A DNA stretch of 64,000 nt from Raja brachyura (taxonomy: Eukaryota): the NCBI GenBank assembly GCA_963514005.1, contig OY740799.1:11036001-11100000 (forward strand), read 5' to 3'. The translations under genes and the position numbers were made by a program. Shown piece by piece: positions 13,325 through 63,800 of this stretch (the stretch's first letter is position 1; every line of letters begins with the position of its first letter). The notes under the pieces are model-generated. The model was not told the DNA's origin and ran no database searches. It worked only from the letters and a program-made list of their open reading frames with translations.

Positions 13325-15280
13325 GGAGGCATGGAGTAAATGAGGTGCTAGATGAGTATAAAGAATGTAAAAAGAATCTTAAGAAATAAATAAGAAAAGC
13401 TAAAAGAAGATATGAGGTTGCTTTGGCAAGAAAGGTGAAAGTAAATCCAAAGGGTTTCTACAGCTATATTAATAGCAACAGGATAACGAGGGATAAAATT
13501 GGACCATTAGAGAGCCAGAATGGACCGCTATCTGCAGAGCCAAAAGAGATGGGGGAGATATTGAACAATTTCTTTTCTTCGGTATTCACCAAGGAGAAGG
13601 ATATTGAACTCTGTGAGGTAAGGGAAAAAAGTAGAGTAGCTATGGAAACTATGAGATTCAAAGAGGAGGAAGTACTGACACTTTTGAAAAATATAGAAGT
13701 GGTTAAGTCTCCAGGTCCTGACAGGATATTCCCAAGGACATTGAGGGAAGTTAGTGTAGAAATAGCAGGGGCTATGACAGAAATATTTCAGATGTCATTA
13801 GAAATGGGAATAGTGCCGGAGGATTGGCATACTGCGCATGTTGTTCCATTGTTTAAAAAGGGTTCAAAGAATAAACCTAGCAATTATAGACCTGTTAGTT
13901 TGACGTCAGTGGTGGGCAAATTAATGGAAAGGATACTTAGAGATAATATATATCAGCATCTGGATAAACAGGGTTTGATCAAGAACAGTCAACATGGATT
14001 TGTGCCTGGAAGGTCATGTTTGACAAACCTTCTTGAATTTTTTGAAGAGGTTACTAGGGAAATTGATGAGGGTAAAGCAGTGGATGTTGTCTATATGGAT
14101 TTCAGTAAGGCATTTGACAAGGATCCCCATGGAAGGTTGGTTAAGAAGGTTCAATCTTTGGGTGTTAATGGCAGAGTAGCAAGATGGATTCAACAGTGGC
14201 TGAATGGGAGATGCCAGAGAGTAATGGTGGATAGCTGTTTGTCAGGTTGGAAGCTTGTGACGAGTGGGGTGCCTCAGGGATCTGTGTTGGGTCCACTGTT
14301 GTTTGTCATGTACATCAATGATCTAGATGATGGGGTGGAAAATTGGATAAGTAAGTATGCAGATGATACTAAGATAGGGGGTGCTGTGGATAATGAAGTA
14401 GATTTTCAAAGTCTACAGAGAGATTTGGGCCATTTGGAAGAGTGGGCTGAAAGATGGCAGATGGAGTTTAATGCTGATAAGTGTGAGGTGCTACATCTTG
14501 GCAGAACAAATCAAAATAGGACGTACATAGTAAATGGTAGGGAATTGAGGAATGCTGTTGAACAGAGGGATCTAGGAATAACTGTGCATAGTTCCCTGAA
14601 GGTGGAATCGCATGTAGATAGGGTGGTAAAGAAAGCTTTTGGTGTGCTGGCCTTTATAAATCAGAGCATTGAATATAGGAGTAGGGAAGTAATGTTAAAA
14701 TTGTGCAAGGCATTGGTAAGACCAATTCTGGAGTATGGTGTACAATTTTGGTCGCCTAATTATAGGAAGGATGTCAACAAAATAGAGAGAGTACAGAGGA
14801 GATTTACTAGAATGTTGCCTGGGTTCCAGCAACAAAGTTACAGAGAAAGGTTGAACAAGTTAGGTCTTTATTCTTTGGAGCGCAGAAGGTTAAGGGGGGG
14901 GGGGGACTTGATTGAGGTCTTTAAAATGATGAAAGGGATAGACAGAGTTGATGTGGATAAGCTTTTCCCATTAAGGGTAGGAAAGATTCAAACAAGAGGG
15001 CATGACATGATAATTAAGGGACAGAAGTTTAGGGGTAACATGAGGGGGAACTTCTTTACTCAGAAAGTGGTGGCTGTGTGGAATGATCTTCCTGCAGAAG
15101 TGGTGGAGGCAGGATCGATTTTAACATTTAAAAGTAAAGTGGATAGGTATATGGACGGGAAGGGAATGGAGGGGTATGGTCTGAGTGCAGGTAGATGGGA
15201 CTAGGGGAAAATAAATGGTCGGCACGGACTGGAAGGGCCGAGAAAGCCTGTTTCCGTGCTGTAATTGTTATATGGTTAAC
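13325..15280 (+). mobile_element. CR1-clade LINE, 5'-truncated, uninterrupted RT ORF 13423-15204
   Basis: RT motifs [29 protein letters not shown] and YADD, followed by a CR1-type 3' UTR. Confidence 0.95.
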
Positions 15281-17675: not shown

Positions 17676-19270
17676 CAGTGGCTTGCAAACGTTTTCATAC
17701 CCCTTGAACTTTTCCATGTTTTGTCACATTACAACCACAAACATAAATGTATTCTATTGGGATTTTATATGATAGACCAACACAACATGGCGCATAATTG
17801 TGAAGTGGAAGGAAAATTATACATGGTTTTTCACTTTTTTTTACAAATAAAAAACTGAAAAGTGTGGCTTGCAAAAGTATTCAGCCCCCTCTGATACCCC
17901 TAAATAATCCAGTGCAACCAATTGCCTTCAGAAGTCAACTAATTAGTAAATAGAGTCCACTTGTGTGTCATCTAATCTCAGTATGAATACAGCTGTTCTG
18001 TGAAGGCCTCAGAGGTTTGTTAGAGGACATTAGTGAACAAACAGCATCATGAAGCCCAGGGAACACACCAGACAGGTCAGGGATAAAGTTGTGGAGAAGT
18101 TTAAAGCAGGGTTAGGTTATTAAAAAAAATCCCAAGCTTTGAATATCTCACGGCGCACTGTTCAATCCATCATCCGAAAATGGAAAGAGTATGGCACAAC
18201 TGCAAACCTACCAAGACATGGTAGGTCCACCTAAACTTACAGGCCAGGCAAGGAGAGCATTGATCAGAGAAGCAGCCAAGAGGCCCATGGTAACTCTAGA
18301 GGAGCTGCAGAGATCCACAGCTCAGGTGGGAGAATCTGTCCACAGGACAACTATTAGTCGTGCACTCCACAAATCGGGCCTTTATGGAAGAGTGGCAAAA
18401 AGAAAGCCATTGTTGAACCAAAGCCATAAGAAGTCCCGTTTGCAGTTTGCCACAAGCCATGTGGGGGACACAGCAAACATGTGGAGGAAGGTGCTCTGGT
18501 CTGATGAGACCAAAATTGAAGTTTTTGGCCTAAATGCAAAACGCTATGTGTGGCAGAAAACTAACACTGCACATCACCCTGAACACACCATCCCCACTGT
18601 GAAACATGGTAGTGGCAGCATCATGCTGTGGGGATGCTTTTCTTCAGCAGGGACAGGGAAGCTGGTCAGAGTTGATGGGAAGATGGATGGAGCCAAATAC
18701 AGGGCAATCTTGGAAGAAAACCTGTTAGAGTCTGCAAAAGACTTGAGACTGGGGCAGAGGTTCACCTTCCAGCAGGACAATGACCCTAAACATACAGCCA
18801 GAGCTACAATGGAATGGTTTAGATCAAAGCATATTCATATGTTAGAATGGCCCAGTCAAAGCCCAGACCTAAATCCAATTGAGAATCTCTGGCAAGACTT
18901 GAAAATTGCTGTTCACAGATGCTCTCCATCCAATCTGACTGAGCTTGAGCTATTTTGCAAAGAAGAATGGGCTCTAGATGTGCAAAGCTGGTAGAGACAT
19001 ACCCCAAAAGACTTGCAGCTGTAATTGCAGCGAAAGGTGGTTCTACAAAGTATTGAGGGGGGCAGAATACTTTTGCACGCCACACTTTTCAGTTTTTTAT
19101 TTGTAATAAAATTTGGAAACCATGTATCATTATCCTTCCACTTCACAATTATGCACCACTTTGTGTTGGTCTATCACATAAAATCCCAATAAAATACATT
19201 TACGTTTGTGGTTGTAACGTGACAAAATGTGGAAAAGTTCAAGGGGTATGAAAACTTTTGCAAGCCACTG
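17676..19270 (+). mobile_element. Full-length Tc1/mariner DD34E transposon, Passport-like, inactivated
   Basis: TIRs of about 210 bp starting CAGTGGCTTGCAAA, with TA on both flanks. Transposase runs from ATG 18049 to TGA 19056 with WSDETK, FQQDND and SPDLNPIE (34 residues between D and E). It has a nonsense codon at about 18121 and two frameshifts, and is inserted inside an older CR1. Confidence 0.95.
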
Positions 19271-36731: not shown

Positions 36732-37116
36732 TTAAGGAAGTTGTTTCAGAGGAAGTGGCGCAGGGGTATGGAGCAGCAACCCATTCTCCTTGTCTGGAAT
36801 ATCAATCATTGTCACTTTGTTGTTCTGAAGATATTTGTTAATATTTGCTTTTATCTTTCCTATCCTTACCCGAGTGTCTAGATCAGGTATGGTACTCTCA
36901 TCTCCCAGGTCTTTCAGAATGGATTTCAATAGTTTGCGCAGCCACTTTGTGCCGTAACTCTGCTCATGGGAGGGAAGCATTTGAACCTGACTTTCAACTC
37001 GGAGTAAGAGCTCTTCATCATCTCTGATCTTAGTGATGATCTTTAGCCCGTGACACAGCTTTTCAACTTGTTGAATGTTTTTCTGTTCAAGGTCATCAAG
37101 TTTGTTTGCACATAGA
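36732..37116 (-). CDS. Terminal exon: last LRR plus helical C-terminal cap
   Basis: Acceptor ttgctttcag|T completes TAT (Y). It reads YLCANKLDDLEQKNI... through to TAA at 36734-36732. Confidence 0.8.
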
Positions 37117-40100
37117 CTGAAAGCAACAAGGCAATGAAAATTAGCAAATGCTTCAATCGTATTTAAATCAGGAATCCGAAAATCAAATTCCAACCATCTC
37201 ATTCACGTTATCTTAATAATCATCAAATTCTACAATGAGGAAGTGGCCATTCAGCATCATAACTGTCCAGCCCTTTAGGGAGCTTTCCACTTGCTCACTC
37301 CTTCTACTCTTTCTCGTATCCGTGCAAATGTTTCTTCTTCAAATATTATTACTCCCATTTGAAAATTTGAACAAAAGTTCCCTTATATCCTAATTTTCTT
37401 TGACCTTCTAAACTATTTACTCATCTAAACTATTTCCAAACCTACATCTCGTTTCTTTTTTTTATGACCCAATTAAGGATGTGCCTGGTTCCTTCCGAAA
37501 AGCGTAATCTTTACCAGCTAATCTTAGTACAATGCTAATGGTGATTCAGCCACAGTCTTGAGTTAGAATGCACTCTCAATCCTTGCTCCTTTCCTGCCAC
37601 TCCATCACACTGAAACAAAAACATATGGACATGTCTGGAGCAGCAATGTTCCTTGCGTGGTAGAGGGTCCCATGGAGGCTGGGAAAGAAAAAAAAGACTG
37701 ACTCAGCGGGTCAGTCAGCATCCCTGGAGAACATGGATAGTCGGGACCCTTCTTCAGTTTAATTAGTCTGAATTGATCAATCAGATTAATCAAACTTGCA
37801 GGTCGGTACACTTCTTCAGACTAATCAGTTTGACCAAAGGGTCTTATCCCAAAACGTCACCTATCCATGTTATCCAGGAATGCTGCCTGACCCGCTGCAT
37901 TACTCCAGCTTTTTGTGTCTTTCCCTGGTAAACTAGCATCTGCCGTGCCTTGTTTCTATATTTTCACATTTACATAATGTGTCTCATACTCACCAACGCC
38001 AACACAATTGCACACAAACCAATCCTTGTGAGCATTTATCAAATAAACTGCTTATTCACTCACATCTACCAGCTACTTACTAGAGCTTCTGGAGAGTTTT
38101 GTTGCATTTCAGGTACTGAGTCATGTTCTCTGTGCCTTCACCTGTGATCCCATTGTCATACAGGCGAAGGATTTTGAGACTTCTGTTTCTTGCCAGAGCT
38201 TTCCAAAGAATCTGAGCTCCCGCCGAACGTAAAGAGTTTGTGCCACTCCTGAAAACGGAACCAAATGGCAAATGTCAGGGATGAGAAGCTCTATAGAAAC
38301 TTGGAGAATTTTACAAGAGGATCTATGTGATGAAAATTCTTACGATAATGTCTCAATCCTGCACTTTGGGTCTTCAAGGACGGCACTTAAATTCTTTGCT
38401 GACTTCGGAGTCAGTTTGTTGGAGCTTACCCTGGAAACACAAAACGTTGAAATCAATTAGAGACCCGAGTGCCTGGGGACAGAACACAAGCCTCACAAAC
38501 TGCTGCCTGCAAATTAACAGTTGCGCCCCTGCCAGGAGAGCAGAGTCTAACCTTGGTCTAACGCGTGTGTCTGTGCAAAGATTTTTGAACAATAGTGCAA
38601 ATGGGGCTTAAAATGACCAGATAATTACATAGTTTAAGAGATCCTGTGCTTCTGCTTGAGCAGTTTCTAATACACAAAATCAATTCAACCTCGTTTATAA
38701 TAATCAATGTTTGGATATTTGGATACACAAGAGACAGCAAAAGCTGGAACCTGGAGCAAAAACAAACTGGCGGAGGAACTCAGCGGGACAAGCAGCATCG
38801 GTGTAGGCAGACAGACAGTCGATGTTTGCAGTCGAGGATTGAGAGCAGAAAGGGGATATGGCCAGGACAGAAGTGAGTGGGAGACCGAGAGGCAGGATCT
38901 GGCAAATGATAGGTAGAAACAAGGAACTGATTTACACAAAAGAACACAAAATGCTGTAGTAACTCAGCGGGTCAGGCAGCATCTCTGGAGAACGTAACAG
39001 GTGATATTTCTTCTTCAAACTGATGATCAGTCTGTAGTGAGGTCCCGACCTGAAACGTCAGTGATCCGTGTTCTCCAGAGATGCTGCCTGACCCGCTGAG
39101 TTGCCCCAGCACTTTGTGTCCTTAAGTAATAGGTGGATCCAGATGAGGAGTGCTGAGATGAACCTGAAGCTGAGGAGGTGATAATGGATACAAAGGACTG
39201 TAGATTATGGAATCAGGTAAGAAATGATAATGGTGAGTGGAATCACATTAGGGTGGGATGGTGGGCAAAAGCTGGGCAGTGGAGGGAATTGGGAAATCAA
39301 GTGGGTGTAATGTGCAAGTGATACACTGATGGAATCATTTGGGAAGGGGTAGGGTGATTACAGAAACTGAGAGTAAGAGGGGTTGGGTTTGAAAAGAAGG
39401 GGCATGTGAGACAACCTAGGTGTATCAGGAGACAACAAATAGACAGAGGGGTTACGTGAATTTGATGTTCATACCATTAGGTTGTAGACCACCCAGGTGA
39501 GATAGGAGATGCTGTTCCTCTAGATTCATGAAAACCTGTCCATTGACACTGCTGTGCTGGAAATGGGGTGGGGCAAGATTTACAGAAAGAACAAACCCCC
39601 AACAGGTATATTTGCAGGTAAAGCAAACCGTCCCCAAGTCTTTTTATCGTGATCAATGCAAGTGTGCTCATAAGAGCAACAACTAGAATGAATGCATAGA
39701 ATTAAATCTCTGCCCTTGTGGTTATTACAATGCAGCTCTGTGACTCATTGCCGCTCTGTGGCTCTACATGGCAACATTGGAGGAGGGTAGGGTTATGATA
39801 GAACAATGTAGGTAAGAGATGATTGCACAAATTGTTTCCATTCTAGCCTTGAAGAGTAGCATCTCCATTTGCATATATTTCATTACAACTTTCAGGCACA
39901 AATATTAGCTGGGATAGAATAAATCAGGACATGCAGGGCATAAAATGTGACAAAGGAAAGTATAAAACATGCCGACAAACATTGAGCATGCAAGAAGGTA
40001 GATTAGCTCAACTGGCACTTAATATTCTTTTGAATGTCATTACTCACAAAAGAGTTCTGCACTTGACTAGAATTTCTTGGAGCTGCTTTATTCCTTTATC

Positions 40101-43100
40101 ACCAATGTTACAGTGCCTCAAATCCATCTCCTCCACAGTGGAATGATTGAGACAGTAGCACAAAGCACGCAGATCGAGGGGGCTCAGAAAAAAGTTGTGA
40201 AAATCCACATGTCGGATGCAAGGAGATACTTCAGCCGTTACAGTGGCATCATTCAGTTCAAAGAGACAATGCATCAAATTCAGCAATTCTGCCTTCTTAA
40301 CGTCTCGCTGAAGGCTGTTTTTGAACCATGTTGTGAGAGCTCTGGCTGTAGAAGGGGGGAGAGGAGCTCTATAGTTCCACAACTTGCCATCTCTTCCTGC
40401 GGTTAGGAAGCCAGTGAGAAACCTCAGAAAATTGTACAGTTTCTCTGTGTGATCAGGTTGAAAAGATTGCAAATAAAATTGGCTCATTTGATTTAGTGGC
40501 CTTTTCCCAAAGCACCACAGATCCAGACACTTGACCAACTCTTCAGCTTCATGGTTGAGTAAAGTAGCACAATACAAAGCTGCAAATTGTTCCTTCAGCA
40601 CTGCATGGTGGAACGCAAAGACCCCTTGGCATTTACAGTCCAGCACAAGATTTGAGAGATATTTTGAAAGGATGTCTGGGTCTATTTCATAGGTCTTCAG
40701 ATCAGTCACATTTATTTCAAGTTTCCCTGATAGCAGAGAGTTGAAGGATAGTTCTCCCAGTTTCAGGATGGTGTCTTTAAACAATTCCTTCTCCTCTTCA
40801 CTCTTATTCTCAGCGTCTGTTTCTTTACACGTGCTGCAGTTAAACAGACTGTACAGCAACAATGTAAAAACTTTGCTATTTGTCACTGGTTCATTTGCAG
40901 GCACTTGTTGAGAGCTGGTACACTTGTCCAAAATATTGCACAGAATGAAGCTGTTGAGGGGATTGGAAGCCAGACATTTGATGGTCGCATTCTCTGTAAT
41001 GCGTTGAAACATTTCTTCTGCCTTTTGCTTCTCTCCACAAAACACCTCACAATATCTTTTCAGCTGATCATTGGTAAAGCCAGATATAACAAAAAGCTGA
41101 TCAAAGTAGTTCTTGCTGAATTCTATCTGATTGGTATTCCATCGGGAGGTAACCAACACCTGGGCTTCTCGAAGGAGGTTCTTGGATATTAGTTTGGAAA
41201 CAAGAACACCTACTTCTGCCTCACTATCCAGGTTGAAATCAGAGCCAGATGGATTCCATTGCAACTGATGGGCAAATTCATCAAGCCCGTCCAAAATGAT
41301 CAACACATCTTGAGGGTTCAAGAGGAGTTCCGTTAGGACTGATGACAAAGGTGTGCAATGCTTCTTGAGCAGATCCCGGAGAGATGTCTTTCCTTTAACC
41401 TCATTCAAGTCACGGAATCTGAGAACCAAGACACTCCTCAAGGTGTGGGTTGGTTGAGATGCCCACTCTTGCTCCATGCTGACAACAGTCCAACTTTTCC
41501 CTACTCCTGCATCACCTACCAGCAGGACTCGCTTTGAGAAATTTCCTTCCTGAAGCAAAGACAGCAGTTGTGAAATTTGTACTTCTTGTGCAACATTTGA
41601 GTCATCACTCCTGATAAGATCACCGTCTGGGTCTTGTTCCTTCGGGTTGGTAATATTGATGGTTCTGGCAAGCGAATAGTTTGCGAATCGCTGTTGTGTT
41701 AATGAACAACATAAATGCATTTTATCTTTCAAGATGTACCCTTTATAGTTCTGAATGGCATCTGAAGAAAAAAATACATTTCTCACAATTAGTAAGTATT
41801 TTATTATCATGGATTAACAAAATGTGAGAACTGTGAGCATCAGATATCCATCAAGTGCAGATCCCCTTTAAGAATTCCCACATCGCTTCACGTTTAATTT
41901 GTCAGAGTTATGCAGCACAGAAACAGCCCCTTCAGCCCACCTTGTCCATGCCAATCATCAAGTAACCATCCATACTATTCCATTTGCCAACTGTTGGTCA
42001 GTATGCCCTGCTGATACAAGTATTAAAATCTTGCAGATTTTCCATTCGTCATCTACACCAGCTTTTGGTTGGCACTTTGTTACAAAGTTCAAAATATCCA
42101 TATTATGAAAATATTTCACATAACAAAATCTGATGCAGTTTGAAAGTGAACCTGGGATTCCCGGGAGCGTGGGGATCCTCCAGAATGACGATCCTCCTGC
42201 CAGATAATACTCAATGGCTAGATTATGGTCTCCAGCATGCAACTCCATTGTAGAATGGATCCATGATTAGGGAGACCACTTCTACTATTGTGGGCAGAAA
42301 CTACTGCATGCTGGAGCATAACTTAAGAAAATCTCAATGGAGGTTGGTTCTTTACCTTTTATATTGTCTGCCAGTAAATGAATATCTGGAAAAATAAATA
42401 GAATAAACCACATGTTAGAGTGTGTTCCTCTCAAAGAATGTCATATACACTGTGGCTCAAAGCGCCTAGAAATCCTTTCCCATTGGAGTGTTCTGAACAC
42501 ATTCTCGAATAGGTATTCAGTTTGTGTGATTATTGGACAAAATCTTAAACATTTTACTCACTCTCTTCATTATCTGGTTTCTTCTTGTTTTTCATTTTCC
42601 AAAACAAAATTCCAACTGCAATTAAAACAGGCAGCACTGCAAGTAGGAGTACAAGCTTGTGCCTTTCCGAAGCTGGATCGGTGCCACTGGGTGTATTATT
42701 CTCCGATGTATCTATGATGTTCAGAACACAAAAGTGCAAATGGTTAGTGTTCAATTAAGAATTGGGCTAAAACACGCTTTCAAATCAAGGTTTACTATAA
42801 TGTCATTAATTTTATAATTAACATTTGGGAGCAGGATTGATAAAATCTGATTGACCCTTTTATTGCAAGTATAAGTCTTCTATTTTGAATACAACTTTTT
42901 AGAAGCAACAAGTGCTAACACGATACAAACCTGTCACAAATGACTATGACCACAATCCCCAGATCAACAGTGCTGCTATGTGCGTTCACATGGGCTAAGC
43001 TATGCCGGGCTTTTTGTGGGATATAGGGAGCTGTCACTGTTTTGGGGGCAACTCTGGCACATCCCTCAACTCTTCTTCTGGTACATCGACGATTCTATCA

Positions 43101-45983
43101 GTGCTGCTTCGTGCACTCAGGCACAACTCAAATGCCTTCCTTTTTGCTTCCAATTTCCAGCATCTGACTCTCCCCTTCTCCTTCTGGATCTCTGTTATCA
43201 GTTCAGGGGATTGGTGAGCGACAAACTGACATTACAGGCTGAAGAGAAAGATCTCGATCCGAAACATCACCTATTCCTTTTCTCCAGAGAACCCACTCAG
43301 TTGCTCCAGCTTTTTGTCTATCTTCGGTTTAAACCAGCATCTTCAGTTCCTTCCTACACAACAAGAGTTCCCTTGATCTTTCCTTCTACCCAGTTGCCTC
43401 TCTGTTCAATGGATCATCTTTGCAAATTCCAACAGCTCCAATAAGACTTGACCACCAAACATATATTTTCCTCTGCATAGGAAAGAACTGCAGATGCTGG
43501 TTTAAATGGAAGATAGACGTAAAATGCTGGAGTAACTCAGCAGGACATGCAGCATCTCTGGAGAGAAGGAATGTGTGACGTTTCGGGTCGAGACCCTTTT
43601 TCAGACCGATTTCCTCTCCTCCCTTTTCAGCATTTTGAAGGAATCACTCTGTTTGAGTGCAGGCAGAGGGCAGTTATTTTAACTGACATTGTTGGCGTGG
43701 ACATTACGGGCCGAATGACTGCGAGAGTTGGAACGTCATGTTGGAGCTGTACTAAACACTGCTTACACTGCATTTGGAACACTGAGTGCAGTTCTAGTTG
43801 GCACGTTACAGAAAGTGTTATTGTAAAAGCATTCACATGATATTCAGCTGCATGTCGCCCAAAATAGTGGAATGTAATTATAATGAGAAATTGGAAAGGC
43901 TGGATTTTCACTCACTGGAATGCCAGATGACAGGGTACTCTGTCTCTACCAGTTTAAATGGGATATCAATGGGATATAGTCAGAGTCTTTTTCCACAGGG
44001 AGCCAGAACTAGAGGCACAGATTTCATGGGGACGCAAGTTGTGACAGACGCTGGAATCTGGGTCAAAATACAAGAGAAACTCGACATCTACGGAGGGAAA
44101 TGGACAGATAAGATTGCGGGTCGAGACTAAGCCCAAGTTCAGGGTGAGACTTTTAAAAGAGATCTGATGCAAAAGTTTTCACACTGGACGATAATACCTG
44201 GGATGAGCTTCCAGAGGAGGTAGTAGAGCAGGGGTGGGCAACCTTGTTCTGCATCGGTGCTGGGACGCATGTCTGTGAGCGGATGGCGGGCCACATCTAT
44301 CACGTGTTCACATGGATCCCACCCCCATCCCATCCCGGATGGCAAGCATCAGATCACGTGTTCACAGAAGTTAGACAAAATGCTGGCGAAACTCAGCGGG
44401 TGAGGCAGCCTCATGCAATCCTACATGTCTCACCTGCTGAGTTTCTCCAGCATTTTTATCTCCCTTTGATTTTTCCAGCAGCTGCAGTTCTTTTTTAAAC
44501 GTGTTCACAGAATGTGCGCGGCCGTGCCGGCGGCTTTGCGCAGGATGCGGTACAGCCAGAGCTGAGCCGCTCTTGGCACTCGGAGGGCCGGATGATTTCA
44601 GGTTAGGAGCCACATTCGGCCCGGGGGCTGTAGGTTGCCGACCCCTGTTGTAGAGGGTGATACTATGACATTGTTCGATAGACATTTGGAAAGGTACGTG
44701 GATGGGAAAGACACAGAATGATACTGGTCTAATGCATTCAAATGGGATTGGCAGAGACTGGCATTGGCATGAGATGGCCAAAAGATTCCCTTTCTGTGCT
44801 TTACAATTCTGTGAAATTTACACAACAAAACATCGATCAATCTGTCACAAGATGCACTCACCATTTAATTTTAGTTCCACCACGTTCTCTGTGAATGGCA
44901 TTCCATCATCCACAGTTACAAAGCAAGTGTAGTTTCCCACATCCGATAACAACATTCTTTCCAATTTCAGGCTCGCATTCCCTTTGGAGAATTCCGATTG
45001 AAATAGTTGAGTGCGGCCCAGGAATGCTGTGTCGTGATGCTCCGGATGGGCTGATCCAGAATAGAAACTGTAAACCACGGCGAGACTGTCTGTCCGCTGC
45101 CATGTGATGATGAGATTGTTCAGATTGAAGTTGGATGAAGCATGGAAGGTGCAGGGCAGCCAGATGTCTTTATTCAACATCCCATAGGATCGAGAGAAAG
45201 ACCCTTCAGCTGGGAAATACAGGAAATGAAAACGCATGCGTTAACTTGCACATAAAGTTGGAGTCATCTACCTCCAAACTTCCTGTGCTCCAACCGAATA
45301 TCACTCAGTTCAGTTTAGTTTATTGGCACGTGCACTGAGGTACAGTGAAAACCTTTTGTTGCATGCTATCCAGTCAGTAGAAAGACAATACATGAGAACA
45401 ATTGAACCATACAATGTACAGTTTATTTACAGTGTATTATAGTACAGTACAAGGGAATAACGTTTAGTGCAAGGTAAAGCCAGCAAAGTACGAACAAGGA
45501 AAGTCTGAAGGTCACCAAAGAGGTAGATAGTAGTTCAGCACTGCTCTCTGGCTGTGGTACGCTATAGCTTCCAGCATGCCACAAATCCAATCCACTGACA
45601 TGTTTCCACATCTACTGACTCTATCACACTTTACAAGATATTACTTTAGTTACAAAATGAAATGAACGGATAAAAGGAATGTTAGAATTGAAATTAAGGT
45701 AAAAGCAGGAGAATAATGTCACCGCAATAGGCAAATAAGCAATGAAAGAAAAATTGTGTGAGAATCTTTGTTATATTGTTGAGCAAAGGGTTTACTCTTC
45801 AATCTTAAATTAGGCAATGAATAAAACAGGAAACGTAATTCCTCTAAGATCAGATTCATAACTTGTGAGAAGCAGCCAGCGAGTGGATGACAAATGTACA
45901 CAATCTCCCCATTGGGATGAACACTCACCCAAGCTAGGGAACAGCAGCAATGACAACAGCATCTTTTCCAATGTACACTCCAT
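36732..45983 (-). CDS. Predicted type I transmembrane NLR: signal peptide - IgV (B7-like) - TM - NACHT - LRR, 978 aa, 8 coding exons
   Basis: Exons: 45983-45929, 45209-44862, 42711-42562, 42385-42356, 41761-40048, 38430-38344, 38248-38081, 37116-36732. All introns are GT-AG and phases match (1,1,1,1,2,2,2). The total is 2937 nt = 978 aa + stop, with no internal stop. Confidence 0.8.
38081..38248 (-). CDS. 168-nt LRR exon (two RI-type repeats)
   Basis: SGTNSLRSAGAQILWKALARNRSLKILRLYDNGITGEGTENMTQYLKCNKTLQKL; phase 2-2, ttttcag / gtaagt. Confidence 0.9.
38344..38430 (-). CDS. 87-nt LRR exon
   Basis: VSSNKLTPKSAKNLSAVLEDPKCRIETL; phase 2-2, tttccag / gtaaga. Not in the ORF track. Confidence 0.85.
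40048..41761 (-). CDS. NACHT-HD1-WH-HD2 exon with first LRRs (NLR family)
   Basis: Walker A GDAGVGKS, Walker B LIILDGLDE, sensor-1 VLVTSR, NPL motif, WH motif FAFHHAVLKEQFAALY and HD2 motif LLNLMHCLFEL. Acceptor ttttcttcag; phase-2 donor TT|gtgagt. Confidence 0.95.
42356..42385 (-). CDS. 30-nt juxtamembrane micro-exon (NIHLLADNIK)
   Basis: Acceptor tatttatttttccag, donor AAG|gtaaag. Phase 1-1, so it keeps frame between the TM and NACHT exons. Confidence 0.65.
42562..42711 (-). CDS. Stalk plus transmembrane exon
   Basis: 150-nt phase 1-1 exon. Hydrophobic LVLLLAVLPVLIAVGILFW is followed by a basic stop-transfer segment KMKNKKK. Acceptor catcatag, donor gtgagt. Confidence 0.85.
44229..44647. 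mobile_element. hAT (Charlie-like) MITE with nested Penelope insertion
   Basis: TIRs CAGGGGTGGGCAACCT / AGGTTGCCGACCCCTG; 8-bp TSD tagtagag / ttgtagag. Confidence 0.85.
44862..45209 (-). CDS. Ig V-set domain exon, B7/butyrophilin-like
   Basis: 348-nt phase 1-1 exon. It carries canonical IgV motifs WLPCTF, IITWQR, GRTQLF and GNASLKL...DVGNYTC. Acceptor ttcccag, donor gtgagt. Confidence 0.9.
45929..45983 (-). CDS. Signal-peptide exon of Ig-TM-NLR gene
   Basis: Acceptor tcttcaag|GCA ATG, peptide MECTLEKMLLSLLLFPSL, phase-1 donor G|gtgagt. Splicing gives ...FPSLAEG, a plausible A-x-G cleavage site. Confidence 0.8.
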
Positions 45984-46309
45984 TGCCTTGAAGATTAAAA
46001 ATAGAACAGGTTAGTTTTTTGAGCATCTTCTCCAAATCTTCAGGAACAGTGCCTCGGGAGCGATGGATAACAAACCAAGTTGATGCAAAATGTCATCACA
46101 GACGCCTGCCTTCATCAGAAGACGGCTCTGAGAAATAATAAACGGTTCACATCCTCCAGAGTCACAGGGTGGACTTTTATTCTCAGAGGGCACTGCTGTC
46201 GACACGGCTGGGCTAACACTGGACCCTTGACCTGTGGATTATAATTCTAAAACCGATGATCTCATGTGCTTCAGTGTATGCCAATATTCAATGACTTGCA
46301 TGAGTCAAC

Positions 46310-49218: not shown

Positions 49219-49300
49219 AAAGTATTTCGATCGCATTTATCCTCGCCCTTTGGGTTGTCCGGAGCCTGGAACCGTCTTATTAAATCATCTCGACCACATC
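49219..49300 (-). other. Candidate non-coding first exon of the Ig-TM-NLR gene
   Basis: CpG-containing segment just downstream of the ISRE cluster, ending at donor |gtgagt (49218). The signal-peptide exon has an acceptor 3 nt before its ATG, which suggests an upstream UTR exon. The 5' end is approximate. Confidence 0.45.
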
Positions 49301-49331
49301 GTTCTTTCGCAGCAGGCGGCTGTGCGGAGAC

Positions 49332-49440
49332 GAAACCGAAAAGGGCTTAACAACTCCACCTCTTAATTTGTGTTTATTGGAGGTTTCATTTCTCCAGCGA
49401 AGGTTTCATTTCTCCAGAGAAGGTTTCAGTTCTCCGGAGA
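49332..49440 (-). promoter_or_regulatory. ISRE/IRF-element cluster upstream of the Ig-TM-NLR gene
   Basis: GAAACCGAAA at 49332-49341. Three tandem 20-bp units at 49381-49440 (AGGTTTCATTTCT twice, then AGGTTTCAGTTCT). Minus-strand CCAAT at 49376-49380. Confidence 0.6.
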
Positions 49441-49454
49441 ACTAAAATCCAAGT

Positions 49455-52407
49455 GTTTACTAGTGCTGTCAGGGAGGATTTAAACTAATGTGGGGGGGGG
49501 GGGGGGGGGGGGAGGGAGCATGAGCAGAGAGGCAGAGGGGTGTAAAATGAGGGTAGAAGCAATAGGTAGCAAGGTGAAAAGTAAGTGGCAGGCAGAAAAA
49601 TCCAGAGCAAAAATCAAAAAGGGCCACTTTTCAACATAATTGTATAAGGGGTAAGAGTGTTGTAAAAATAAATCCTGAAGGCTTCATGTATCAATGCAAG
49701 GAGCATTCGTAATGAGGTGGATCAGCTGAATGTGCAGATAGTTATTAATAAATATGATGTAGTTGGGATCACAGAAACATGGCTCCATGGTGACCAAGGC
49801 TGGGAGCTGAACATCCAGGGATATTCAATATTCAGGAGGGATAGACAGAAAGGAAAAGGAGGTGGAGTAGCATTGATGGTTAGAGAGGAGATTAACGCAA
49901 TAGAAAGGAAGGTCATTAGCTTGGAGGATGTGGAATCGATATGGGTAGAGCTGCGAAACACTAAGGGGCAGAAAACGCTAGTGGGAGTTGTGTACAGGCC
50001 ACCTAACAGTAGTAGTGGAATTGGGGATGGCATCAAACAGGAAATTAGAAATGCGTGCAACAAAGGTAAAAGAGTTATAATGGGTGACTTCAATCTACAT
50101 ATAGATTGGGTGAATCAAATTGGCAGGGGTGCTGAGGATGAGGATTTCTTGGAACGTATGCGGGATAGTTTTCTAAACCAACATGTAGAGGAACCAACGA
50201 GAGAGCAGGCTATTCTAGACTGGGTATTGAGTAATGAGAAAGGGTTAGTTAGCAGTCTTGTTGTGCGTGGCCCCTTGGGCAAGAGTGACCATAATATGGT
50301 TGTGTTCTTCATTAGGATGGAGAGTGACATTGTTAATTCAGAAACAAGGGTTCTGAACTTAAAGAAAGGTAACTTTGAGGGTATGAGACGTGAATTGGCC
50401 AAGATAGACTGGCAAGTGATTCTTAAAGGGTTGATGGTGGATATGCAATGGAAGGCATTTAAAGACTTTAAGGATGAACTACAACAATTGTTCATCACAT
50501 TTTGGCGAAATAATAAATCAGGGAAGGTAGTGCATCCGTGAATAACAAGGGAAATCAGGGATAGTATCAAAACACAAGATGACGCATACAAATTAGCCAG
50601 AAAAAGCAGCTTACCAGAGGATTGGGAGAAATTTGGAGTCCAGCAGAGGAGGACAAAGGGCATAATTAGGCAAGAGAAAATAGATTATGAAATAAAACTG
50701 GCAGGGAGCATACAAACAGACTGCAACAGTTTTTATAGATATTTGAAGAGAAAAAGGTTAGTTAAAACAAATGTAGGTCCCTTGCAGTCAGAAACTGGTG
50801 AATTGATCATGGGGAACAAGGACATGCCAGACCAATTGAATAACTACTTTGGTTCTGTCTTAAGGATTACAAATAATCTGCCGATATAGCAGGGGACTGG
50901 GGGTAATATGAGATGGAGGAACTGAGTGAAATCTGGGTTAGCCGGGAAGTGGTGTTAGGTAAATTGAATGGATTAAAGGCCGATAAATCCCCAGGGCCAG
51001 ATAGGCTGCATCCCAGAGTACTTAAGGAAGTAGCCCCAGAAATAGTGGATGCATTAGTGATAATTTTTCATAACTCTTCAGATTCTGGAGGAGTTCCTGA
51101 GGATTGGAGGGTAGCTAATGTAACCCCACTTTTTAAAAATGGAGGGAGAGAGAAAACGGGGAATTACAGACCAGTTAGTCTCACATCGGTAGTGGGGAAA
51201 ATGCTAGAATCAGTTATTAAAGATGAGATAGCAGCACATTTGGAAAGTAGTGAAATCATTGGACAAAGTCAGCATGGATTTATGAAAGGTAAATCATGTC
51301 TGACGAATCTTATAGAATTTTCCGAGGATGTAACTAGTAGAGTGGATAAGGGAGAACCAGTGGATGTGTTATATCTGGACTTTCAGAAGGCTTTCAACAA
51401 GGTCCCACATAAGAGATTAGTATACAAACTTAAAGCACACGGTATTGGGGGTTTAGTATTGATTTGGATAGAGAACTGGCGGGCAGACAGGAAGCAAAGA
51501 GTAGGAGTAAACGGGTCCTTTTCAGAATGGCAGGCAGTGGCTAGTGGGGTACCGCAAGGCTCAGTGCTGGGACCCCAGCTATTTACAATATATATTAATG
51601 ATCTGGATGAGGGAATTGAATGCAACATCTCCAAGTTTGTGGATGACATGAAGCTGGGGGGGGCAGTGTTAGCTGTGAGGAGGATGCTAGGAGGCTGCAA
51701 GGTTGGGTGAGTGGGCAAATGCATGGCAGATGCAGTATAATGTGCATAAATGTGAGGTTATCCACTTTGGTGGCAAAAACAGGAAAGTAGACAATTATCT
51801 GAATGGTGGCCGATTAAGAAAAGGGGAGATGCAAGGAGATCTGGGTGTCATGGTACACCAGTCATTGAAAGTAGGCATGCAGGTGCAGCAGGCAGAGAAG
51901 AAAGCGAATGGTATATTGGCATTCGTAGCAAAAGGATTTGAGTATGAGATCAGGGAGGTTCGACTGAAGTTGTACAGGGTATTGGCGAGGCCACACCTGG
52001 AATATTGCATTCAGTTTTGGTCTCCTAATCTAAGGAAATACATTCTTGCCATAGAGGGAGTGCAGAGAAGGTTCACCAGACTGATTCCTGGGATGGCAGG
52101 ACTTCCACATGAAGAAAGACTGGATACACTTGGTTTGTACTTGCTGGAATTTAGAAGAATGAGAAAAACATTTTACACACAGAGAGTGGTGAATCTGTGG
52201 AATTCTCTGCCACAGAAGGTAGTTGAGGCCAGTTCATTGGCTATATTTAAGAGGGAGTTAGATGTGGCCTTTGTGGCTAAAGGGAACAGGGGGTATGGAG
52301 AGAAGACAGGTATAGGGTACTGAGTTGGATGTTCAGTCATGATCATATTGAATGGTGGTGCAGGCTCGAAGGGCCTACTCCTGCACCCATTTTCTATGTT
52401 TCTATGA
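49455..52407 (+). mobile_element. CR1-clade LINE ORF2 (APE endonuclease + RT), frameshifted
   Basis: EN motifs GITETWL, GGGVAL, VYRPP, MGDFN and SDHN (49717-50541). RT pieces at 50913-51710 and 51703-52323. Tail (ttctatgt)n. Confidence 0.95.
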
Positions 52408-62859: not shown

Positions 62860-63800
62860 TTAGAATAAGGATATAAGTGGCTTGTTGTAGAACCTCTGAA
62901 AAGTCGATTCATTTGACCATCCTGCGGCCGCGAGGATGTGGTCTAGAGGGACGTCCATTGCCCTCACCACTGACGTCGACGCTGCCCTGGTGGAATGAGA
63001 TTTAACGTTTTCAGTATTAACTCCCGCACATCCCAGGACTTGCTTCAGCCATCGTGAGATGGTCTGAGATGACACTTGCTTATGTGGCTTTTTGTGGCTT
63101 ATAAGTAGTGCTACCTCAGACCCTCTGAGGCTCTTCGTAACATCAATATAATGCTTCAAATGCTCCACTACACGCAGGCGTGAATCTGCTGGATAAGCTG
63201 ACAATACAAGCTTGAATCCTGACACCCCTGGTCTGCTCTGTTTGAGTAAGTCATAGACGTAAAAAGTAACGGCATTTTGTGATGACACCATCCAGTCCAG
63301 ATGCAGTTTGTTGAGAGTCTGAACCCTCTGCGCTGATGTAAGCACCATGATCATGACCAATTTGAGGGTGATCCTTAGTAAGGACAATGATGAGGCTGTT
63401 CCCCATTGACGGAGCACCATGAGTACCATGCTCACATCCCAGATTTGAGAGTACCTAGGCCCAGGAGGATTGGAATTAAACACACCCTTCATGAATCTTG
63501 ATATTAACAGGTGGGACCCTAAAGGTGGAGATCTGACCCTCGACACAAGTATGCTGACAGGGCACTCCTGGCACTGTTGATGGCACTGTAACTCAGCCCT
63601 TCACTGGATAGGAATTCTAGCACATCTGGGATGGAGACCGTGTGATGTGATGTTCCCATGTAAGCAAAATTCCTCCCATTTCCTGATATGGGAGAGGTAT
63701 TGCCTTTTTGTGCTATCCCTCCAGGATGATGTGATGGTATCCACAGTCTGATTGGACAGGCCCAGGTACGGCCTTTTAAAAATCTGCAAATCAACAAATT
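62860..63800 (-). mobile_element. DIRS-type retrotransposon tyrosine recombinase fragment
   Basis: Catalytic motifs SAQRV, KSHSTRAASTS and AAGWSNESTFQRFY in ORF 62860-63546. Frameshifted N-terminal part GLSYSAINSARSALS. Confidence 0.85.

Follow-up and report, generated by a model that had tools for sequence, protein, structure and literature searches.

A skate gene for a predicted membrane-spanning NLR with a B7-like IgV ectodomain

Gene structure and spliced transcripts at the skate locus

We analysed a gene on the minus strand of a 64,000-nucleotide stretch of the genome of the skate Raja brachyura (assembly GCA_963514005.1, contig OY740799.1, positions 11,036,001 to 11,100,000; hereafter the window). 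In one open reading frame (ORF) the gene joins a signal peptide, a single immunoglobulin V-type (IgV) domain, a transmembrane (TM) helix and a NACHT-leucine-rich repeat (LRR) module of the NLR type (Table 1). An original prediction made from the sequence had proposed eight GT-AG exons of matching phase and a 978-aa ORF, and the same model was recovered exon by exon. All introns are GT..AG, with phases 1,1,1,1,2,2,2; each exon reads open in frame, the codons split at the seven introns give A, D, N, D, L, S and Y, and the summed exons amount to 2937 nt, that is 978 aa plus the stop. The distance from the TM-exon donor to the NACHT-exon acceptor, given before as about 800 bp, was found to be 801 nt. 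Exon borders were set by splice-site contexts, by tblastn of a full-length orthologue (P0001) and by spliced contigs. Searches were run per exon, and the natural orthologue P0001, 93% identical over the NACHT exon, served as full-length proxy; by tblastn the window exons are colinear with it at 72-93% identity. The N-terminal three exons are symmetric with phase 1-1 and the NACHT exon begins in phase 1, an arrangement that satisfies the requirement of in-frame exon shuffling.

Table 1. Features of the gene and transposon ORFs elsewhere in the window (NBD, nucleotide-binding domain; HD1 and HD2, helical domains; WHD, winged-helix domain; RI, ribonuclease inhibitor; RT, reverse transcriptase)
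Feature	Position in window	Strand	Content or basis
Whole gene	45983 to 36732	minus	eight GT-AG exons
Exon 1: start codon and signal peptide MECTLEKMLLSLLLFPSL	45929..45983	(-)	ORF, GTGAGT donor
Exon 2: single IgV (V-set), phase 1-1	44862..45209	(-)	Pfam, spliced contigs
Exon 3: stalk, TM helix, stop-transfer, acidic run	42562..42711	(-)	
Exon 4: 30-nt microexon, phase 1-1, encodes (N)IHLLADNIK	42356..42385	(-)	canonical AG/GT sites
Exon 5: juxtamembrane helix, NACHT NBD, HD1, WHD, HD2, first LRR	40048..41761	(-)	
Walker A GDAGVGKS	41493-41516	(-)	
Walker B LIILDGLDE	41277-41303	(-)	
Sensor-1 VTSR	41142-41153	(-)	
WHD FHHAVLKEQFAALY, with conserved WHD histidine	40572-40613	(-)	
Exon 6: one 28-residue RI-type LRR	38344..38430	(-)	tblastn of P0001, splice sites, phase
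Exon 7: two RI-type LRRs	38081..38248	(-)	Pfam LRR_6, tblastn of P0001, splice sites
Exon 8: last LRR, three-helix tail (~36825-37022), disordered C-terminus	36732..37116	(-)	tblastn of P0001, 87% identity
TAA stop	36732-36734	(-)	end of exon 8
Transposon ORF, reverse transcriptase	13423-15204	(+)	RVT_1 1.4e-33
Transposon ORF, Tc1/mariner-type transposase	18191-18994	(+)	HTH_Tnp_Tc3_2 and DDE_3
Transposon ORF, LINE endonuclease and RT	49717-51710	(+)	
Transposon ORF, tyrosine recombinase	62860-63546	(-)	Phage_integrase

For transcript evidence, contig sets from Logan were aligned to 40800-46100, namely RNA-like ones from three closely related organisms (X1, X2 and X6, with about 2-4% nucleotide divergence from the window) and one DNA run of the probable source species (X15). 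Among the spliced contigs, the joint 41761/42356 was found in X1, X2 and X6, the joint 42385/42562 in X1 and X2, and the joint 45209/45929 in X1 and X6; the first two are the junctions 42356>41761 and 42562>42385 that the original prediction had put up for checking. All three joints read CT..AC on the plus strand, that is GT..AG for the gene, and none of the three was present in X15. One contig of X2 (contig 16, 3015 nt) carries the NACHT exon, the 30 nt, 42562-42711 and then 44862-45205, indicating that IgV, TM, linker and NACHT lie on one spliced contig. In this contig 44862 is spliced straight to 42711, and its 1499 nt beyond 40800 match the length of spliced exons 5-8 (1393 nt) plus a short untranslated region. 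Depth in X1 was 131-274 for exon contigs and 15-21 for intron contigs. P0001 (982 aa) sits on a Logan contig of 3341 nt and a second V-set+NACHT protein, P0217 (1008 aa), on one of 3675 nt; these contigs are too short to contain the introns. A retrocopy is unlikely as judged from the transcriptome-like run sizes, the exon depth far above intron depth and the lack of the joints in the DNA run. The spliced contigs of three relatives, the contigs of P0001 and P0217 and the same architecture in other annotated genomes altogether support one mRNA for signal peptide, IgV, TM, NACHT and LRR. The locus is one expressed skate gene, its splicing being seen in relatives.

The same data bear on the explanation that an adjacent B7-like gene and a separate NLR gene were joined by read-through, gene-prediction error or assembly error. 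The two halves lie just 0.8 kb apart, and assembled contigs cannot prove end-to-end single molecules. However, in-frame GT-AG splicing runs through a conserved microexon in three organisms, and IgV and NACHT contigs on 40800-46100 are of similar depth. The Ig part has no terminal exon, as had been noticed before, and the NLR part likewise has neither a start codon of its own nor an effector exon. The DNA run X15 spans the region with no rearrangement signal at the exon borders, and the fusion is conserved from sharks to alligator with a tree equal to the species tree, as described below. Misassembly or separate mRNAs had been named beforehand as what would speak against the fusion; X15 argues against the first and the one contig that spans IgV and NACHT against the second, although contigs do not establish whole molecules. 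We consider a joining artefact extremely improbable.

Ectodomain, membrane anchor and NACHT-LRR-tail module

The IgV domain and the intact NACHT of the original prediction were both recovered by Pfam, with V-set at E 8.8e-8 in ORF 44845-45237(-), and NACHT at 1.2e-25, NLRC4_HD2 at 6.2e-15 and NOD2_WH at 1.1e-3 in 40044-41810(-). The signal peptide is probably cleaved after the split-codon Ala. Within exon 2, the Ig cysteines were located at 45151-45159 (LPC) and 44923-44931 (YTC), and an N-glycosylation sequon, NAS, at 44971-44979. By sequence search of PDB, the best matches of IgV were CD276/B7-H3 (4.7e-15, one domain) and VTCN1/B7-H4 (1.2e-13), followed at lower rank by MOG, BTN3A (~1e-8), PD-L1 and CD86. 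CD276/B7-H3 and VTCN1/B7-H4 are the nearest solved IgV relatives, and the label 'B7-like' given earlier is appropriate. An IgC domain was not found, as the gene has a single Ig exon with 44862 spliced to 42711, and the AlphaFold2 (AF2) model has one beta-sandwich and a disordered stalk.

A stalk of about 20 residues lies between IgV and the TM helix, LVLLLAVLPVLIAVGILFW, at 42599-42655, which is followed by the stop-transfer sequence KMKNKKK (42578-42598). Because KMKNKKK gives a positive-inside flank, the protein is predicted to take type I orientation. Nearly all orthologues have a hydrophobic 19-mer (Kyte-Doolittle mean >2), then K/R, between IgV and NACHT. Pore formation by bundled TM helices was set aside, the helix being uniformly hydrophobic without a polar face.

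The cytosolic part includes PDNEE-N-IHLL, followed by a juxtamembrane helix and then NACHT. In the window the dileucine sequence E-N-I-H-L-L straddles the exon 3/4 junction, with Glu at 42563-42565 and IHLL at 42372-42383, and the 30-nt microexon supplies the leucines of this E-x-x-x-L-L motif. A motif of the form [DE]xxxL[LI], located 8-15 residues past the TM helix at one aligned site, was detected in 23 of 29 family members, including 12 of 12 elasmobranchs, gar (EGVPLI), alligator (DAEKLI) and most frogs and salamanders. Acidic dileucines in membrane-proximal position are bound by the adaptors AP-1, AP-2 and AP-3 for endocytosis and endolysosomal delivery. Since the membrane-proximal dileucine may be read by AP adaptors, the protein probably moves back and forth between the cell surface and the membranes of endosomes, lysosomes or phagosomes. 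Separately, a Cys pair 35-45 residues past the TM helix (window 41620-41660, HLCCSL, exon 5) was noted as a candidate palmitoylation site. Many orthologues have the pair, among them those of skates, rays, coelacanth, axolotl, Discoglossus and Pleurodeles, but it falls short of conservation in 90% of members and lies in a low-confidence loop of the AF2 model.

The cytosolic part has the properties of an NLR, namely the NACHT motifs, a winged helix with HD2 and the WHD histidine, and RI-type C-terminal LRRs, for which Pfam LRR_6 was matched in 38080-38271(-). The best PDB sequence match of NACHT was NLRP3 (2e-17), followed by NLRP6, NLRP5 and NOD2. With sequence identity of about 20%, none of the solved human NLRs is orthologous to the protein, its placement relative to the named human NLRs being taken from PDB E-values only. 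For structure, an AF2 model was built for P0001 on a 30-sequence family alignment (predicted local distance difference test, pLDDT, 78.5; predicted template modelling score 0.70). The model consists of a beta-sandwich at 31-140, the disordered stalk, the TM helix at 164-184, a helix at 189-213 and a canonical NBD-HD1-WHD-HD2, then seven regularly spaced LRR strands at 716-882, tail helices at 889-900, 911-925 and 934-955 (pLDDT ~88-91) and a disordered end. By Foldseek, ADP-bound NOD2 and closed NLRP3 were closest to it. RI-type LRRs and a helical tail had been predicted, and both are present, but the predicted number of about six LRRs is replaced by seven strands in the P0001 model. For the tail, the PDB sequence search gave no meaningful match and the ESM Atlas no usable match. 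Gar, amphibians and alligator keep the three-helix tail, as does a CARD-type sister clade described below.

No CARD, PYD or BIR match was given by Pfam for any exon or for P0001, in agreement with the original prediction. Where a death-fold or BIR effector would be expected at the N-terminus, TM and linker are spliced directly to NACHT in the transcript. The proposal that an Ig domain replaces the effector in its slot is thus upheld by the lack of a death-fold match and by the splicing together of TM, linker and NACHT. A soluble cytosolic state is likewise not predicted, considering the signal peptide, the sequon, the 19-residue hydrophobic helix and its positive-inside flank.

Distribution, phylogeny and constraint of the family

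By search with the NACHT exon, V-set+NACHT models were found in elasmobranchs at 57-85% identity, including Rhinoraja, Pristis, Narcine, Pristiophorus, Hemitrygon, Mobula, Hypanus, Heterodontus, Mustelus, Scyliorhinus, Stegostoma and Chiloscyllium. The family profile was then scored by exhaustive HMMER search against 1.84 billion representatives, followed by cluster look-ups and Pfam. The exhaustive search was needed, as a word-index profile search missed most members, even rows of the query alignment. Full-length proteins with V-set, TM and NACHT-LRR-tail were identified in spotted gar (W5NES8), alligator gar, African lungfish, the American and Chinese alligators, and the amphibians Hyperolius, Discoglossus, Pleurodeles, Pelodytes, Pelobates, Mantella, Ranitomeya, Pyxicephalus, Engystomops, Ascaphus and Bombina; V-set+NACHT was found in at least 12 amphibians. 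The profile matched in a single stretch, from ~3-18 to ~950, for P0001, P0012, P0035, P0041, P0042, P0044, P0046, P0048, P0052, P0053 and P0054. The check for V-set+NACHT architecture elsewhere, proposed with the original prediction, was therefore positive for elasmobranchs, gar, lungfish, amphibians and alligators. These orthologues are already in public databases as unreviewed entries, under names such as NLRC3-like, NLRC5-like, NLRP1 homolog, NOD1-like or uncharacterised.

TM-only or partial models were found in coelacanth, axolotl, a caecilian, Lissotriton and a snapping turtle. Annotated isoforms or models that start just before the TM helix, without IgV, are P0017 (Ambystoma X2), P0034 (Rhinatrema X2), P0055 (Protopterus X2), P0011 (Pristiophorus) and P0015 (Latimeria). 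Such models could be real alternative-promoter forms, TM-anchored with no ectodomain, or incomplete models.

In a maximum-likelihood tree of the region from NACHT to the C-terminus (quick search), the IgV-TM-NLR family formed one clade with Shimodaira-Hasegawa-like approximate likelihood ratio test support of 89. Within this clade, elasmobranchs (100) were separated from gar, coelacanth and amphibians (96), with extra paralogues in amphibians and a second shark lineage (Mustelus, Pristiophorus B). The root of the clade is insecure because a long amphioxus branch joins beside it. Since the branching of the family equals the species tree, the fusion of IgV-TM and NLR is older than the divergence of cartilaginous from bony vertebrates. 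Among the hits examined there was no IgV-TM-NLR of mammals, birds, squamates or teleosts, which suggests, but does not prove, loss in these four groups.

The closest NACHT-LRR relatives in the tree make up a CARD-type clade of a frog (Spea bombifrons P0071), a snake (Erythrolamprus reginae P0018) and a shad (Alosa sapidissima P0075). Their short LRR and three-helix tail correspond to those of the IgV-TM family. A Pfam CARD match (4.3e-5) was detected at the N-terminus of Spea P0071, whereas a signal peptide, IgV or TM segment was found in none of the three. The clade is auto-named NLRC3-like and has no database name of its own. The NACHT-LRR-tail module common to both clades is thus coupled to CARD in one and to IgV-TM in the other. 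Elsewhere in the tree, apart from the IgV-TM clade and among NLRP3-like sequences, stands a lamprey protein (P0022, Petromyzon marinus, NLRC3-like, 955 aa) with a Cys-rich N-terminus and a hydrophobic helix at 133-151 that has HRRRPRR after it; next come a region with a weak match to FISNA (2.3e-4), NACHT and LRRs. This protein may come from a mis-joined gene model or may represent a second membrane-anchored NLR that arose independently in vertebrates.

Between skate and gar or frogs, identity was 37-40% for IgV, 35-41% for NBD, 36-45% for LRR and 26-30% for HD1-WHD-HD2. Among the family members, the Ig cysteines are kept in 29/29, the GN-x-S/T sequon in 25/29 and Walker A GK[ST] in 28/29, the exception being the degenerate motif of alligator. 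With IgV no less conserved than the ATPase core, a conserved partner is more plausible than a role as fast-evolving pathogen receptor. For the window against X1, the ratio of non-synonymous to synonymous changes per site (pN/pS) over the first 960 nt of the NACHT exon was ~0.35, as calculated from a small sample of 18 differences (8 synonymous and 10 non-synonymous). The alligator protein (P0206, Alligator mississippiensis LOC102567599, 975 aa) retains IgV, TM, the tail and the dileucine DAEKLI; at the Walker A position it has GNTAKIISR and at sensor-1 TAQ, and the ability to bind or hydrolyse ATP may have been lost.

With respect to these data, the Ig-TM part could also be an anchor only, by which the NLR is tethered to endomembrane, with IgV used for folding, sorting or homophilic packing and with no signalling partner. 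Mammalian NLRP3, NOD1 and NOD2 are known to need membrane association, and gene models with TM and without IgV were found in axolotl, caecilian, coelacanth and a sawshark. For anchoring, however, nothing beyond a TM helix would be needed, yet over more than 400 million years IgV has been retained to the same degree as the NBD, together with its disulfide and glycan sequon; in addition, some of the models with TM only may result from incomplete annotation. On this balance an anchor without signalling is improbable.

Outside the coding exons, intronic stretches at 41862-42038, 43101-43631, 44163-44693 and 45225-45578 (introns 1, 2 and 4) showed depths of thousands to millions with many internal joints, in DNA and RNA-like runs alike. 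These are high-copy interspersed repeats and lie outside the message of the gene. Upstream of the start codon, by about 3.4 kb, a 20-bp unit, AGGTTTCATTTCTCCAGAGA, is repeated three times at 49381-49441, within a stretch at 49219-49440; its reverse complement contains GAAATGAAAC, a core of the interferon regulatory factor (IRF) type. The strict pattern of the interferon-stimulated response element (ISRE), GAAANNGAAASY, gave three matches in the window, none of them near the promoter or in the upstream repeat. Interferon inducibility of the gene is possible but unsupported, because the upstream repeat holds IRF-type cores only and no strict ISRE match.

Signalling mechanism and relation to known receptors

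These findings make it very probable that the 978-aa product is a type I membrane NLR, with a B7-like IgV outside and NACHT-LRR in the cytosol, and that it belongs to an ancient orthologous family. Several points weigh against this conclusion. The topology, localisation, glycosylation, oligomerisation and ATPase activity ascribed to the protein are predicted, and no downstream effector domain could be recognised by Pfam in the exons or in P0001. The runs X1, X2 and X6 are only guessed to be RNA, come from relatives, and as contigs are silent on transcript ends. Within the family, the dileucine motif is missing from some orthologues, Walker A is degenerate in the alligator protein, and several NCBI isoforms are without IgV, so that TM-only forms may exist. 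Finally, for the echinoderm analogue AjNLRC4 outside-in signalling is reported (PMC8699970).

Compared with NLRs of the NLRP3/NOD2 type, the skate protein is alike in the NACHT NBD-HD1-WHD-HD2, the RI-type LRRs, the intact Walker A and B, sensor-1 and the WHD histidine. It differs by the absence of PYD, CARD, BIR and FISNA, by identity of only ~20%, and by just about seven LRRs with an extra three-helix tail. NLRP3/NOD2-type NLRs also act at membranes, but by lipidation or polybasic patches, whereas the skate protein is predicted to be integrated into the membrane by signal peptide and TM helix. NLRX1 is similar in being an NLR that lacks a death-fold effector and reaches an organelle through an N-terminal targeting sequence, and its LRR is capped by a C-terminal helical bundle. 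It carries, however, a mitochondrial leader in contrast to the secretory signal, Ig and TM of the skate protein, and was absent among the sequence matches. The CARD-type sister clade shares the short LRR and tail, and differs by CARD and by the absence of signal peptide, IgV and TM.

With B7 proteins and butyrophilins the skate protein shares a B7-type IgV and the (predicted) type I membrane topology, and with butyrophilins in particular the combination of B7-like ectodomain and sensor-type domain in the cytosol. Among butyrophilins, inside-out signalling is known for BTN3A1. In contrast to these proteins, the skate protein has one IgV with no IgC, because the transcript joins 44862 directly to 42711, and it has a NACHT-LRR ATPase of about 780 aa instead of a short tail or B30.2.

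In the open-access literature and bioRxiv, no description of a vertebrate V-set-TM-NLR was found, and none is mentioned in a whale-shark NLR survey. The original claim that the architecture had not been described thus holds for vertebrates as far as found, but Ig-TM-NACHT proteins have been published in sea cucumber (PMC8699970; PMC13133943). AjNLRC4 is a membrane-inserted NACHT protein with Ig outside and NACHT inside (PMC8699970), and AjNLR-new likewise combines Ig with a membrane-inserted NACHT, reportedly in the opposite topology (PMC13133943). Both have two Ig domains and two TM segments where the skate protein has a single IgV and a single TM helix; LRRs, present in the skate protein, are absent from AjNLRC4 as described. 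The echinoderm receptors, compared here by published description only, are likely of independent origin.

AjNLRC4 lends weight to an outside-in mode, in which IgV of the skate protein would bind an extracellular or luminal ligand of microbial or self origin, and clustering would drive NACHT oligomerisation and a cytosolic output, for instance phagocytosis or trafficking as for AjNLRC4. The sea-cucumber protein, with extracellular Ig, TM and intracellular NACHT, is reported to act as a bacterial receptor (PMC8699970). The endocytic sorting motif of the skate family would suit a cargo-internalising receptor, and its ectodomain is conserved. Against this mode, Pfam recognised no cytosolic effector domain, and the complete LRR and the autoinhibited-type fold (best match ADP-bound NOD2) imply that a cytosolic sensing or regulatory module has been retained. 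Moreover, the NACHT-LRR module is common to the CARD-bearing sister clade, and IgV is conserved like the ATPase core and unlike a fast-evolving pathogen receptor. We therefore regard an outside-in receptor, and with it an output of the AjNLRC4 kind, as rather unlikely.

Our leading proposal for mechanism, though a tentative one, is inside-out signalling. In NLRs and other signal-transducing ATPases with numerous domains (STAND proteins), sensing is carried out by the C-terminal part, and oligomerisation brings the N-terminal parts together. Accordingly for the skate protein, we propose that a cytosolic cue would open NACHT-LRR, ATP-dependent oligomerisation of NACHT would bundle the TM helices, and IgV, thereby made multivalent, would be offered as a B7-like ligand to a conserved partner, either on a second cell or luminal. 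Inside-out signalling is favoured because the N-termini of STAND proteins cluster and because the sister clade has CARD at the position of IgV-TM. A similar inside-out logic is used by butyrophilins. Whether the ancestor of jawed vertebrates already had a TM NLR that wired NACHT oligomerisation to clustering of a B7-H3/H4-like IgV across the membrane is, in our estimate, evenly balanced.

Textbook vertebrate NLRs are soluble cytosolic sensors, of which the N-terminal death-fold domains recruit caspases or kinases. The skate gene is predicted to encode an NLR that has the complete ATPase and LRR machinery but carries a secreted-pathway Ig and a membrane anchor in the effector slot. It links B7/butyrophilins and NLRs, immune gene families treated separately until now, and dozens of database entries for the family stand under misleading names. 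The finding raises the questions of whether NACHT oligomerisation can signal across a membrane, what a B7-like IgV recognises when driven by an NLR, and why no member was found in mammals or teleosts, all of which can be tested in gar, axolotl, Pleurodeles and frogs. If the proposal is true, this family, conserved over more than 400 million years of jawed-vertebrate evolution, would provide a direct wire from cytosolic innate sensing to B7-type recognition at the cell surface or in the lumen.

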